Source of the DNA: Orbicella franksi
Taxonomy: Eukaryota
Assembly: GCA_964199315.1 (NCBI GenBank)
Contig: OZ116698.1
Coordinates: 5,146,001-5,210,000, forward strand
Length of the DNA stretch: 64,000 bases
Direction of reading: 5' to 3'
The notes beneath the pieces are model-generated. The model was given only the letters and a program-made list of their open reading frames with translations. It searched no databases and was not told the origin of the DNA. Within the stretch, counting starts at the first letter, position 1. Each line of letters begins with the position of its first letter. This document shows, one piece after another, positions 6,642 to 49,960 of the stretch. A program made the position numbers and the translations under genes.

Positions 6642-6660
6642 ATACTTGCCTGACGCGGGA
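6642..6660 (+). ncRNA. RNU1: U1 snRNA 5' end (nt 1-19), cut off by retrotransposon insertion
   Basis: ATACTTGCCTGACGCGGGA matches U1 AUACUUACCUG plus the sequence of the longer U1 copy at 49799. Confidence 0.85.
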
Positions 6661-6876
6661 TTGCATGGCCGAAGGCCCTATCATTTTGGTACCCCTTTTG
6701 GTGTCCTTTAATTTTGGTAAGTTTCTCAGCTTTTTGGTGGTTTTTGTGGCTTTTCTAGCTATTTTCTGGGTGCCATCTTACCTTCGAGTCTTCTTGTTGA
6801 TTTCTTGGTCACCCATCTAGCATTTGGTTAAGCCGGGTCGCCCATCCATTGGGGTCCTCGCCCATCTGGGCTTAAC
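6661..6876 (+). mobile_element. 5'-UTR stub of an H-family U1-targeting Tx1 element
   Basis: Near-identical to 13172-13390 and 43385-43605 (TGGCCGAAGGCCCTATCATTTTGGTAC...CATCTGGGCTTAAC). Confidence 0.8.
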
Positions 6877-6891
6877 CTTACCTGATGCGGG
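6875..6891 (+). repeat. U1-derived target-site duplication (U1 nt ~3-18)
   Basis: ACCTTACCTGATGCGGG. Confidence 0.75.
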
Positions 6892-7360
6892 CTTTTGAGC
6901 TTAGCAAGGCAAGTCTAGTGGGATTTGCTATTTAATCTGCTGCCATCACAAGCAGAATCAAGTACTGATTGACCTGCAAGACAGGAGGATTGGTAAGTTT
7001 TTACTTCTCGCATCTTTGCCGTGACCCTCCTAGGGACTTTATGCTGGTCTTCTGACCTAACCTAGGGTAAGCGGTTTCTTAGCCTCTTTCCTCCATTTTT
7101 TCTTCTTTCCTTGACTCCATTTTCGGCCGAGAGCTTAACCTTTTGCACTCAATTGTCCCAGTTTTCTGGCCATTACGTGTTTTTGCCTTTTGTTAAGCTC
7201 AGTCACCCATCCGGCTGGGCGGGCCTTCTTTGTTAACCTTGGTCACCCATCCAGCTTAACTTCTCATTTTTCTAAATTTGTGTGGCTTTTTTTTGAGTGG
7301 ATGCTTTTGAATTCACTTTGCGCACTTCGCACTCTTCTGTGCCTTGTGTCTCTTGCTTTA

Positions 7361-7810
7361 ATTTTATTGTAGCCAGGCTTGTCCTGTTGTCCAAATTTAT
7401 CTTAGATTTATTGTGTGCTTCAATTTTGCTTGAGCGTTGCTTGTCTTTAAGCTTTCGCTCTTCCAAATTCTCCCATATTTATTGCTGTAATTTTATTGTA
7501 GCCAGGCAATAGTCCTGTCGTCCAAATTCTTTTTTCTTCCAATAGTATTTATTGTAGTCGGGTAAAATTCCTGTTAACGTATCTAAGTATTAATTAATTC
7601 TCCCTTATTTATTGCTATCCGCTGCGCTTAATTCTATTGTAGCCAGGCTAAAGTCCTGTGGTCCAAATTTATATCTTAACTTTTTGTAGTTTTATTACTT
7701 AAGTAATACTTTTGTAGCCGGGTAAATTCCCGTAGTTTTTCCCATTTATCCTCTTTCCCATGTGCACCTAATTTTATTGTAGCCAGGCAATAGTCCTGGT
7801 GTCTAAATTC
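7361..7810 (+). repeat. Four ~130-140 bp monomers in the 5' UTR of element B
   Basis: ATTTTATTGTAGCCAGGC..AGTCCTG..GTCCAAATT at 7361, 7490, 7631, 7771. Confidence 0.8.
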
Positions 7811-7846
7811 GTTTCCTCTCATTAAATTTGCTGTTGTTGGTCCATC

Positions 7847-9268
7847 ATGCGTGAACACTGCAAAACCGTCAACATTCATTGCGGCAAAAAGCTCCTGGGC
7901 AAATCCCGGGATGAAATCTTGACTGCCATCCTTCAAAAATTTCAAAATGTTGTGGCAGTCCAACAGAACCTTGATGTCATCCGCGTAACTTTCAGAGGAG
8001 GAGCAGGCCCTTGCTGCTCTGCATGAAAAGGGCGTGAGGCTTTTCGGCTTGTGCTGTAGGATGGACGGGGGTCCTCCCACCACTATCGTCCATCTCTTTG
8101 ATTACCCGTATGAGGATCCTGCTGAGGACATCTCCGCCTTCTTAGCTGACTATGGTGTTGTTAAGGGTGTTTGTCACCAAAAGTATTTATGAAATGGTGA
8201 CATTGCCACTGGCACGAGGCTCATTGACATTGTTTTGTCTCAAACTCCTAGAGTGGCTGTTATTAATGGCCCTACTTGTCGGGTTTGGTACCGTGGCCAA
8301 CCCATTATGTGTAACATCTGTGCAACAATTGGGCATAAGTCGTTAAACCACCCATATAAGAATAAATGCCGCCTTTGCGAACAGGACGGTCATTTCGCTA
8401 GAAATTGGCCTAATCCTTGGGGCCTCAATGTTGCTTCTGACGTTTCTGGGGGTGATTCATCTGGCGCTCCCGCTAATGGTGGAGCTCAGGTGGCCCCCCC
8501 TGTGGGATGGTCTAAATTCTTCTGATACCACTGCTAATGGTGAGGTTCAGGCGGTTCCCCTGTGGGTGACCTAAATTCTTCTGGTGTTTCCACTAATGAC
8601 GGGAGTCCCTCGGGAGATCAAAATTCTCCCAGTGCTCCTGCTAATGGTGAGGGCCCTTCAAGTGCCTAATTTTCCTCTGGTGCTCCTGCCAGCAGTGGGG
8701 CCCAATCGGGTTCTCACGAAGTTGCTGGCTCTTCCAGTTGTTTAGCTTCTCCTCGGGTCGCCCCTTCCGAGGGGTCTATTGACTCTTTGGTTGGTTCTCA
8801 TCAGCCGGCCCCTGTTACTCAGCCTTGCTCTAGCCATTCGCTGCCTCCTCAGGAAGAGGTTGCTCCTCCCTCTCAACAAACTGATCCGGAGGAAGTTTTT
8901 GTGGACGCCTCAGACGGCTCTGACATTGAAGAATTTACTGAGGATGTGCCCTCGCTCTGTTCCTCTCAAGCTATCTCTGAGTTCTCTCAGAGCCAAAGTA
9001 TTCTTAGTGGTGTCCAAAACGTTAAACAAAATGGTAGTATTACTGGCAACGTCGTAGTCTCTGATGTTGTTGAAGTCCTAGAATCTTCGGACTTTTATTC
9101 TTAAGCTGATGTTGACTCAATGGATCCATCTTTGGCATCGCTTAAACGCAGCAGGTCCAGAGAGCCCTCGTCCAAAAAGAAGTACAGGACTGTTTCTGCC
9201 TCCCCCCATAGTGGTGGGCGGCACCGTGGTCTGCCGATGGTTTTGCGAGATCGTCCCACTTAGGGCTG
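7847..9268 (+). pseudogene. ORF1 of element B (gag-like, zinc knuckles), frameshifted
   Basis: MREHCKTVNIHC..., RVWYRGQPIMCNICATIGH..KCRLCEQDGHFARN, S/P-rich tail. Confidence 0.8.
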
Positions 9269-48900: not shown

Positions 48901-49613
48901 TTTCGACCTGGATCACCAAGTGTTAGATCTCAATTGGAACATTGCCCACGGTGTCCTCTACACTGCTGACCGTCTTTCCTCTTTTGCCCTTCCTCTCCCT
49001 CTTCCGTGTTTCTGGGTGCTCCTGTTGAGTCTTTGTCTCACTTGTTTTACGCTTGTCCTTTGGCCCAAAGTGTTCTGTCCTGGCTTCAATCGTTGATGTT
49101 CTCCTTTAGTCTGATGTCCCCTGTTCTGCTTGTCCGTGATTCTCTCTTTGGCTGATGAGTTACGTGCTACCCCTCGCGTTTTTGATTACATTCTGAATGT
49201 GTGCAAATTCTTTATTTGCCGGTCTAGGAATGACTTCCGTTTTCGCAGTGTAAAGCCTGGCACTTTGCCTGTCATCGAGTGTATGAAGTTGGGTGTGAAG
49301 TTCAACCTTTCGTTGTTCTTTAAGCGTTTCAAGTCCTCTCGTCGCCGTCATTTTTTTCATCGTCAATGGGGTACTTGTGGTGTTATTGCTTCTGTTACTA
49401 CTGGTCAACTGTCACTCAATATCTAAGTTTTAGTTTATATTAGGTTGTTTGTTGTGTCCTCTTGAACTGCGTCTCCTTAGTTGGTGTACTGTTTGCAGGG
49501 TTGTGTCTGTTGTTTCGTTTCGTCCTGTTCTATCTGTCTTGTGTTTGTCCTTGGTGTTGTCCTGTTTGTTTTGTTTTGTGTGTCGGGGTTTTTGGGTTGG
49601 GAATTTTTCTAAT

Positions 49614-49777
49614 GAGGTAGGTGAGGTTCGATTCCTCGGCGAAGTTGGCGGGCTGGCTACTTTTGTAGGTGTCCCCTACCTTAGGTAGACCAATTGGCGT
49701 TGGACTAGCACTGTATCCTTGTTATGGATGAGACTTGCAGTGGGCAGGCATTGCACTCCTCGCAAGGGAGCCTGGCC
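49614..49777 (+). ncRNA. Structured 3'-UTR module of element H
   Basis: GAGGTAGG/CCTACCTT stem; TGAGG-TTCGATT-CCTCG 49622-49638; CAGGC-ATTGCAC-TCCT..GGGA-GCCTG 49745-49774. Confidence 0.75.
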
Positions 49778-49798
49778 GTCTACCTTAAATACAAAAAA

Positions 49799-49850
49799 AC
49801 TCACCTGACGCGGGAGGTACTGTGATCAAGGACACAGTCCTCTCAAGGCA

Positions 49851-49896
<46 letters not shown>

Positions 49897-49960
49897 AAAA
49901 TGTGGGTAACTCGAGCGTATAATTTCTGGTAGTGGGGACCTGCATTCGCGCTCGCCCCCG
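49799..49960 (+). ncRNA. RNU1: U1 snRNA (nt ~3-164), promoter-less after insertion of H
   Basis: ACTCACCTG, SL1 loop GATCAAGGAC, SL2 loop ATTGCACTTC, SL3, Sm site AATTTCTGG, SL4 GGGGA..TTCGCGCTCGCCCC. Confidence 0.95.

Follow-up and report, generated by a model that had tools for sequence, protein, structure and literature searches.

Diverged Tx1-type elements of corals meet at one position in U1 snRNA genes, with a strong but leaky site preference

The window analysed here, 64,000 nucleotides (nt) of the coral Orbicella franksi (contig OZ116698.1, positions 5,146,001 to 5,210,000), holds four diverged Tx1-like families of long interspersed elements (LINEs), termed B, F, G and H, between the two halves of one U1 small nuclear RNA (snRNA) gene. 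Rfam matches in the window comprise U1 at 49797-49960, U2 3' parts at 6245-6427 and 56477-56666, and 5S ribosomal RNA (rRNA) on the minus strand at 50316-50427. Since the same order of U2, U1 and inverted 5S is also found in contigs of other coral assemblies, the window is part of a tandem U2-U1-5S array, greatly lengthened by transposons; stony corals are the source of the best named protein relatives, Acropora muricata and Montipora foliosa are among the species with relatives, and the sequencing runs in which this DNA is found are samples of corals or coral metagenomes. The window was mapped by tblastn with related proteins and with the intact second open reading frame (ORF2) of another coral. 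Loci with L numbers are contigs from other coral assemblies and coral metagenomes that carry relatives of G, H and B and were chosen blind to their flanks. The features of the U1 system are:

6583-6609, plus strand: conserved block 33-59 bp upstream of U1 +1, invariant in the window, L001, L003 and L007, beside variable spacer
6642-6660, plus strand: U1 nt 1-19, promoter-side half of the split U1 gene, with one T-to-G change in ACTTACCTG
6661-6876, plus strand: stub A, 216 bp of G/H-type 5' leader without a body, 92% identical to 13156-13393 and 87% to 43368-43604
6877-6891, plus strand: copy of U1 nt 4-18 (target-site duplication) on the 5' side of B
6892-13154, plus strand: element B, full length, 6.26 kb, with ORF1 remnants, ORF2, AUUGCAC hairpin and poly(A)
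13155-13171, plus strand: copy of U1 nt 3/4-19 between B and the C leader, with an extra C and CpG decay
13172-13440 (end approximate), plus strand: 'C', a G/H-type leader only, of which ~216 bp are shared with H
33768-36325, plus strand: element F, fourth U1-group family, ORF2 from the endonuclease start to residue ~1041
40081-43368, plus strand: element G, 5'-truncated, from ORF2 residue ~190-225 to the end, with 3' untranslated region (UTR) and poly(A) at 43358-43368
43369-43384, plus strand: copy of U1 nt 4-18/19 between G and H, CpG-decayed
43385-49799, plus strand: element H, full length, 6.4 kb, with leader, ORF1, ORF2, tRNA-like block, AUUGCAC hairpin and poly(A)
49800-49960, plus strand: U1 nt 4-164, body half of the split gene, promoterless and decaying

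A 214-bp spacer separates the upstream U2 fragment from U1 nt 1-19, which pass directly into an element leader. The body half carries ACTCACCTG and at least four other changes relative to the U1 of other loci; one change in the body lies within ACTTACCTG. Differences among the U1 copies of the window are mostly CpG-to-TpG or CpA, a decay that fits old, silenced copies, and the window's own element copies are dead. B retains ORF1 remnants (7865-8459) and an ORF2 (9302-12816) with endonuclease, reverse-transcriptase and zinc-finger domains and many frameshifts; H has an open ORF1 (43874-45580) and an ORF2 (45906-49423) with six in-frame stops and one frameshift. F has an internal deletion, no ORF1 upstream and no 3' end, and is truncated at both ends. 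An earlier reading of the window, made from its letters without database searches (the sequence-only reading), had listed B, G and H as diverged families, which they are, and had missed F.

The 15-mer formed by U1 nt 4-18, allowing up to three mismatches, has five matches on the plus strand of the window (6645, 6877, 13156, 43369 and 49800) and a sixth, weak match on the minus strand; 0.58 matches are expected by chance, and none of 100 shuffles gave six. The poly(A) ends at 13154, 43368 and 49799 are each followed by CTTACCTG or its variants CCTTACCTG and CTCACCTG. At the 5' junctions the target copy runs as ...GCGGG to 6891, where B begins, and as ...ACGGGA to 13171 and ...ACAGGC to 43384, where leaders begin. 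The sequence-only reading had named these three A-tail junctions, together with 5' junctions at 6660, 6891, 13171 and 43384, and all seven coordinates are correct. Its duplication of 16-17 bp, covering U1 nt 3-18/19, is borne out and can be refined: the duplicated target spans nt 3/4 to 18/19, or 15-17 bp, and our best estimate from the sequences is an exact duplication of nt 4-18, 15 bp. This estimate draws on two off-target, 5'-truncated copies (L011 and L043) with perfect 15-bp flanking duplications, which mark them as genuine insertions and the 15-bp stagger as inherent to the machinery. All U1 insertions share the sense orientation of U1.

The head-to-tail stacks that had been described in the window (stub-B-C and G-H-U1) are real, with the correction that the stub and C are only leaders of ~216 bp. 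G has no 5' junction; it starts inside ORF2, directly behind a Penelope-like insertion. A CTT microhomology joins stub A to the U1 stub after it. The C leader gives way to a U2 promoter and U2 nt 1-34 (13469-13593), the start of the next array unit, and this replacement points to deletion. Both remnants are most simply explained as microhomology deletions of stacked elements, with template switching during reverse transcription as the alternative origin.

Identical junctions recur in three other coral assemblies (L001, L003 and L007) and in metagenome contigs. In L001, a full-length G-like element lies between ...ATACTTACCTGACGCGGGA and poly(A)-CTTACCTGATGCAGGAGG..., its flanks being U1 nt 1-19 and U1 nt 4-164, and a second element ends at another U1. 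Both junctions are likewise in U1 in L003 (H-like) and L007 (B-like). The 5' flank of L004 is not clearly U1, and in L005 (G-like, 5'-truncated), L006 (Oculina patagonica) and L059 (Stylophora pistillata) typical tails are followed by unrelated DNA. Stacking, as proposed for the window, proves common elsewhere: at about half of 20 U1-type 3' junctions there is only a short U1 stub and then the 5' end of the next element. Moreover, the stack orders differ between loci (H-B in L007, B-B in L008, an H-type tail followed by a G-type element in L002, G-H in the window). Stacks may have grown from the U1 body or from the stub beside the promoter, two routes with one and the same end arrangement.

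The conserved block at -59 to -33, which judging by its position is probably the proximal element of the snRNA promoter, is kept upstream of every U1 stub and is still joined to the elements. The array units in the window, L001, L003 and L007 are all occupied by insertions. A contig from an RNA library links the spacer (6440-6660) straight to the uninterrupted rest of U1, so unoccupied units exist in a related sample.

Two of the stacked loci hold copies of unusual structure. A 1.58-kb derivative (L056:638-2221) has a leader, an open 410-residue ORF1 and a 3' tail, lacks ORF2, and sits at the U1 site in a stack; it may be a non-autonomous passenger. In L007:1629-9922 the ORF1-to-endonuclease segment of the B-like element occurs three times with a period of 2302 bp, which could be a true tandem triplication or an assembly artefact.

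To place the elements, a maximum-likelihood tree of 50 elements was computed from a query-anchored alignment on the intact ORF2 (residues 460-1185, stops masked). All U1-linked elements form one group with 98% ultrafast bootstrap, divided into the subgroups G (100%), B-broad (100%), F/L023 (97%) and H (100%); F falls with the U1-linked L023-L025 in the third of these (97% support). Off-target copies are scattered within these subgroups, and the group does not include the Keno-type, U2-linked elements found in the same arrays. ORF2 identity is 42% between B and G, 47% between B and H, 45% between G and H and 56% between F and H, and falls to 25-33% against the U2-linked elements, values that the decay of the window copies lowers somewhat. 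Two statements of the sequence-only reading thereby hold: that B, G and H differ clearly in ORF2 (42-47% identical), and that the specificity is old, as one group with four deep subgroups indicates. It had also suggested a phylogeny of the endonuclease and reverse transcriptase with Keno and Mutsu; the ORF2 tree does set the U1 group apart, and named references for those two families are absent from it.

In the intact 1189-residue ORF2 of L024:913-4479, Pfam identifies Exo_endo_phos (18-242), RVT_1 (529-777) and zf-RVT (1022-1069), and pieces of the endonuclease, reverse-transcriptase and zinc domains are also found in B, G and H. The ORF1 of the G-like element in L001 contains zf-CCHC (E = 1.3e-9); Pfam gave no match for the open, 569-residue ORF1 of H in the window. 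Relatives of ~50% identity carry the NCBI name 'Transposon TX1 149 kDa protein', the elements nearest to the group are inserted in U2 at the Keno site, and a protein atlas returned generic endonuclease and reverse-transcriptase clusters only. Four contigs (L022-L025) have fully open 1189-residue ORF2s that are 99.7-99.8% identical, three of them with a U1 junction. Such near-identical intact frames suggest that the U1 lineage has been recently active in at least one coral.

The families also share features at the RNA level. About 100 nt before the poly(A), a 3' UTR block of ~65 nt (H 49614-49692, B 13005-13082, G 43248-43318, L024:4639-4716 and others) keeps 82-86% nucleotide identity across families whose proteins are ~45-60% identical. 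The block holds a tRNA T-arm sequence (GGGTTCGAnTCCC), and eight predicted pairs are kept through two-sided changes; the block is probably the RNA element recognised by the reverse transcriptase. It is followed by a hairpin with AUUGCAC (B 13113-13135, G 43325-43345, H 49745-49790), the loop sequence of U1 stem-loop II, and the motif stands 25-50 nt before every U1-group poly(A). In B-type tails it lies in a loop of 10 nt above a 7-bp stem, and changes from one family to another are compensatory. At the other end, the consensus 5' splice site GGT[A/G]AGT is found at ~+56-62 in 8 of 11 G/H-type leaders, where 0.045 are expected per 260 nt, and at +13-14 in two B-type leaders. Its positions are:

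window 43440-43453, 6716-6729 and 13226-13239: leader motif GGT[A/G]AGT
L001:7661, L003:8072, L007:797 and L008:2498: the same motif at other loci

In predicted folds the leader motif pairs with the U1-derived ACUUACC at the RNA 5' end, with mixed z-scores from +0.3 to -3.7. The motif could serve as an intron donor, as a binding site for the U1 small nuclear ribonucleoprotein (snRNP) or as a closing helix.

How strictly these elements keep to U1 was read from 3' junctions. Metagenome contigs scanned with aligned ORF2 C-termini gave 51 loci, among which evident duplicates were merged before the junctions were read. The 3' junction lies in U1 in L008, L013, L023/24, L025, L029, L038, L044, L050 and L056, and in degenerate form in L014; it lies outside U1 in L010, L011, L016, L021, L026, L036, L040, L043, L047, L049 and L058. 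When the scan is taken together with the contig look-ups, a sample defined by ORF2 C-terminal homology and blind to flanks, 12-13 of the 26-27 3' ends stand at the identical U1 nucleotide, a share that is probably underestimated because short-read assemblies break at repeats. Full-length copies are almost always in U1, since 10 of 11 G/H-type leaders, which represent full-length 5' ends, directly follow U1 nt 18/19. The frequency of U1 among the flanks exceeds the 20% for one sequence type by which Kojima defines a target-specific LINE; exclusivity of the R2 kind, with essentially all copies in the target, is not seen, given the sampled 3' ends elsewhere. The specificity is therefore a strong preference, leaky and not strict.

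We consider it very probable that these elements are Tx1-type LINEs belonging to one lineage of corals, and that their insertion machinery has a strong preference for a single site where the U1 gene begins. In the mechanism that we propose, the endonuclease, which would recognise U1 sequence around nt 1-19, would nick the bottom strand opposite the boundary of U1 nt 3 and 4 (3|4), and the poly(A)-tailed RNA would be reverse-transcribed from that nick. The top strand would be cut 15 bp downstream, after nt 18 (18|19), so that U1 nt 4-18, including the 5' splice-site recognition sequence, would end up on both sides of the element. Such an insertion parts the U1 promoter and nt 1-19 from the U1 body and kills that gene copy. 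Because both flanks retain the target, more elements can insert and head-to-tail stacks build up; by this logic, as the sequence-only reading had supposed, the site might be hit again indefinitely. The U1 promoter, directly behind which full-length copies sit, probably drives their transcription. The U1 nt 1-19 carried at the RNA 5' end may then base-pair with the cut target and help to make 5' joining precise, and the conserved 3' UTR structures may act in template recognition.

Several observations weigh against this account. Of the 26-27 3' ends in the sample, 14 abut unique sequence that is unrelated to U1; the sequence-only reading had named a majority of non-U1 flanks as the result that would speak against it, and a share of about half comes close to that. 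Both copies that come from a named species, Oculina patagonica (L006) and Stylophora pistillata (L059), sit outside U1; two of the non-U1 copies have clean 15-bp duplications and are true insertions; and most of the nearest relatives of B, at 79-88% identity, are likewise found away from U1. The RNA data gave no transcript with its start at U1 +1: one raw-read run had no matching reads, and none was found in the assembled contigs of three metatranscriptome runs, which are possibly DNA-derived. Finally, the tree was computed without named Tx1 reference sequences and without a true outgroup, for which reason we regard the U1-linked elements, on the basis of their ORF2 sequences, as a separate group and claim no direction of target change.

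At most off-target flanks Rfam found no alternative RNA-gene target. One off-target copy (L059:7585-13412, Stylophora pistillata) lies between tRNA-Thr genes, its poly(A) ending 98 bp before one of them, and another (L036:1673-1745) ends 26 bp before a weak tRNA-like match. They may recall Tx1-clade families that target tRNA spacers; these are two cases, and chance could account for them.

The same junctions might arise if the site were chosen by delivery and not by the endonuclease, with the ribonucleoprotein brought to U1 genes by U1A/SNF on the AUUGCAC hairpin, or by RNA-target pairing, and a weakly specific endonuclease cutting at an A|C step. The presence of [A/G]TTGCAC 25-50 nt before the poly(A) in every U1-group tail, and the compensatory changes in the B-type hairpin, would suit such recruitment, as would the off-target flanks, which start mostly with C and often with CA, as though the nick needed little sequence. 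A parallel exists in Dada-U1A and Dada-U1B, unrelated DDE DNA transposons of zebrafish that target U1 and carry subterminal ATTGCAC, for which their authors suggested a role in target recognition (PMC3706591). Against these points stands the precision of the junctions, which are exact to the nucleotide in families that are 42-47% identical. Sequence-reading endonucleases of R1 and Tx1 elements yield nucleotide-exact junctions, and by analogy with them the coral junctions would speak for an enzyme that reads U1. About half of the U1-type junctions, moreover, abut a U1 stub of 15-19 nt that lacks the stem-loop II region, although hits on a full U1 body could still yield that arrangement. On this evidence we judge recruitment improbable.

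We regard as far less probable still, and indeed as very nearly discounted, the passive copying of a few ancient insertions by unequal crossing-over and gene conversion. Duplication of units is to be expected in a tandem U2-U1-5S array, the same locus was seen twice among metagenome contigs (L014/15, L026/27/55, L029/30, L044/45), and deletions or rearrangements between units are visible in stub A and in the C stub joined to a U2 promoter. Passive copying would nevertheless have to account for four deeply diverged families at one nucleotide, for stack orders that vary among loci (L007, L008, L002 and the window) and for 5'-junction bases that vary between copies. The ORF1-only derivative at the U1 site and the near-identical intact copies argue against it as well, and off-target copies with duplications reveal mobile machinery. 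LINE-mediated snRNA chimeras formed by template switching were also considered and rejected; they carry snRNA at the 5' end only and are unable to explain either poly(A) joined to U1 nt 4-164 or the U1 promoter upstream.

Within the preferred reading of a U1-targeting LINE lineage, the RNA features raise the thought that it lives as a U1 mimic, with a captured promoter, a U1 5' end that pairs with the leader motif, the tRNA-like block and an imitation of the U1A/SNF-binding stem-loop II. We think this unlikely, if worth stating. If true, such mimicry would let the elements exploit the factors of U1 snRNP biogenesis, be it for stability, for nuclear routing or for reaching U1 loci, and Dada-U1, which ends in ATTGCAC, would have arrived at this solution on its own.

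Among described elements the closest parallel is Keno, a Tx1-clade LINE specific for U2 snRNA genes and reported from fish, frogs, lancelet and Hydra. Like Keno, the U1 elements are endonuclease-bearing, poly(A)-tailed, two-ORF LINEs that occupy a single nucleotide position in an snRNA gene of the Pol II type, run in the same direction as the gene and lie in multicopy arrays. Keno-type elements at U2 nt 38/39, the site described for Keno and Utopia, are present in the window, L001 and L007, and are the nearest relatives outside the U1 group. The U1 elements differ from them in targeting U1 nt 3|4, in forming a separate group with ORF2 only 25-33% identical, and in a tail with the AUUGCAC hairpin and the tRNA-like block. 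They are not Keno members by site: B, G and H end at U1 nt 3|4, and only the separate elements K1 and K2 are at U2. Dada-U1 shares with them the target gene, a fixed orientation, tandem insertions separated by duplicated target and ATTGCAC near the ends. It differs in moving by cut-and-paste, with a 6-8-bp duplication at CTGCGAAT in mid-U1 and without reverse transcriptase or poly(A), whereas the coral elements, with a reverse transcriptase, an endonuclease and a poly(A) end, duplicate U1 nt 4-18, which sets them outside Dada-U1. No element resembling Dada-U1 occurs here.

The Tx1 clade is known for repeated target switches among small RNA genes, microsatellites and transposons. Mutsu (5S rRNA), Dewa, Kibi, Koshi and Tx1L are, like the U1 elements, target-specific families of this clade, and none has been reported for U1; Mutsu differs further in that the 5S genes of the window and the other loci are uninterrupted. 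Life in conserved multicopy RNA genes is also shared with Utopia (U2; restriction-like endonuclease), R1 and R2 (28S rDNA), and with Utopia occasional tandem insertion and weakly specific families too. These three differ in endonuclease type or clade, and target duplication is slight or absent in R2 and arthropod Utopia, in contrast to the site-regenerating 15-bp duplication of the U1 elements. A 2015 list of Tx1 targets names U2, U5, 5S, satellites, microsatellites and transposons and no U1, and a 2015 paper gives Keno and Utopia (U2), Dada-U1 and Dada-U6 as the only known snRNA-gene transposons. A U1-targeting LINE lineage, absent from both lists, thus adds a new target for target-specific Tx1 LINEs. 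No published U1-targeting retrotransposon was found in the full texts searched; the Repbase or Dfam catalogues may contain an unpublished entry.

Conserved multicopy genes can give a parasite a lasting home, as target-specific LINEs show, and these LINEs are also studied as tools for site-directed DNA insertion. Here the target is one of the most conserved short sequences of eukaryotes, namely the stretch with which U1 recognises 5' splice sites. With old families, a regenerating 15-bp site, and intact as well as off-target copies, these elements offer a natural system for the gain and relaxation of specificity in apurinic-type endonucleases. With every array unit seen in the assemblies occupied, one may also ask how corals retain enough working U1 genes.

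The window holds further features beside the U1-linked elements:

1068-6270, plus strand: second Tx1 element, ending at U2 nt 38/39 (6271 onward), its 3' UTR interrupted by a piggyBac-like transposon
36326-40080, plus strand: Penelope-like retroelement, 3.75 kb, with 608-bp direct repeats 99.3% identical
50316-50427, minus strand: 5S rRNA gene of the array unit, found by Rfam with a weak score, uninterrupted
50898-56511, plus strand: K2, a U2-linked Keno-type Tx1 element between U2 nt 1-22 (50880-50897) and nt 38/39 onward (56512-56666)

The Penelope-like retroelement is outside the U1 system; it has an ORF at 38347-39993 with a reverse-transcriptase domain and sits exactly between the truncated F and G. 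The idea that F and G are one element split by this insertion was rejected, as F stops at residue ~1041, G starts at ~190-225, and the two belong to different subgroups. The coding part of the element at 1068-6270 is probably U2-linked. Its 3' UTR contains, at a TTAA site, the piggyBac-like transposon at ~3343-5850 (DDE_Tnp_1_7, ORFs 3607-4721), flanked by copies of a CTGTGC...GCACAG hairpin (~3290-3335, 5890-5930 and 6030-6066). A truncated Keno-type ORF2 at 24939-26632, 64-84% identical to the intact U2-linked element of L007, lies ~11 kb past the U2 promoter and nt 1-34 at 13469-13593; the two may be parts of one U2-linked element broken by later insertions (Sola/BEN, satellites).

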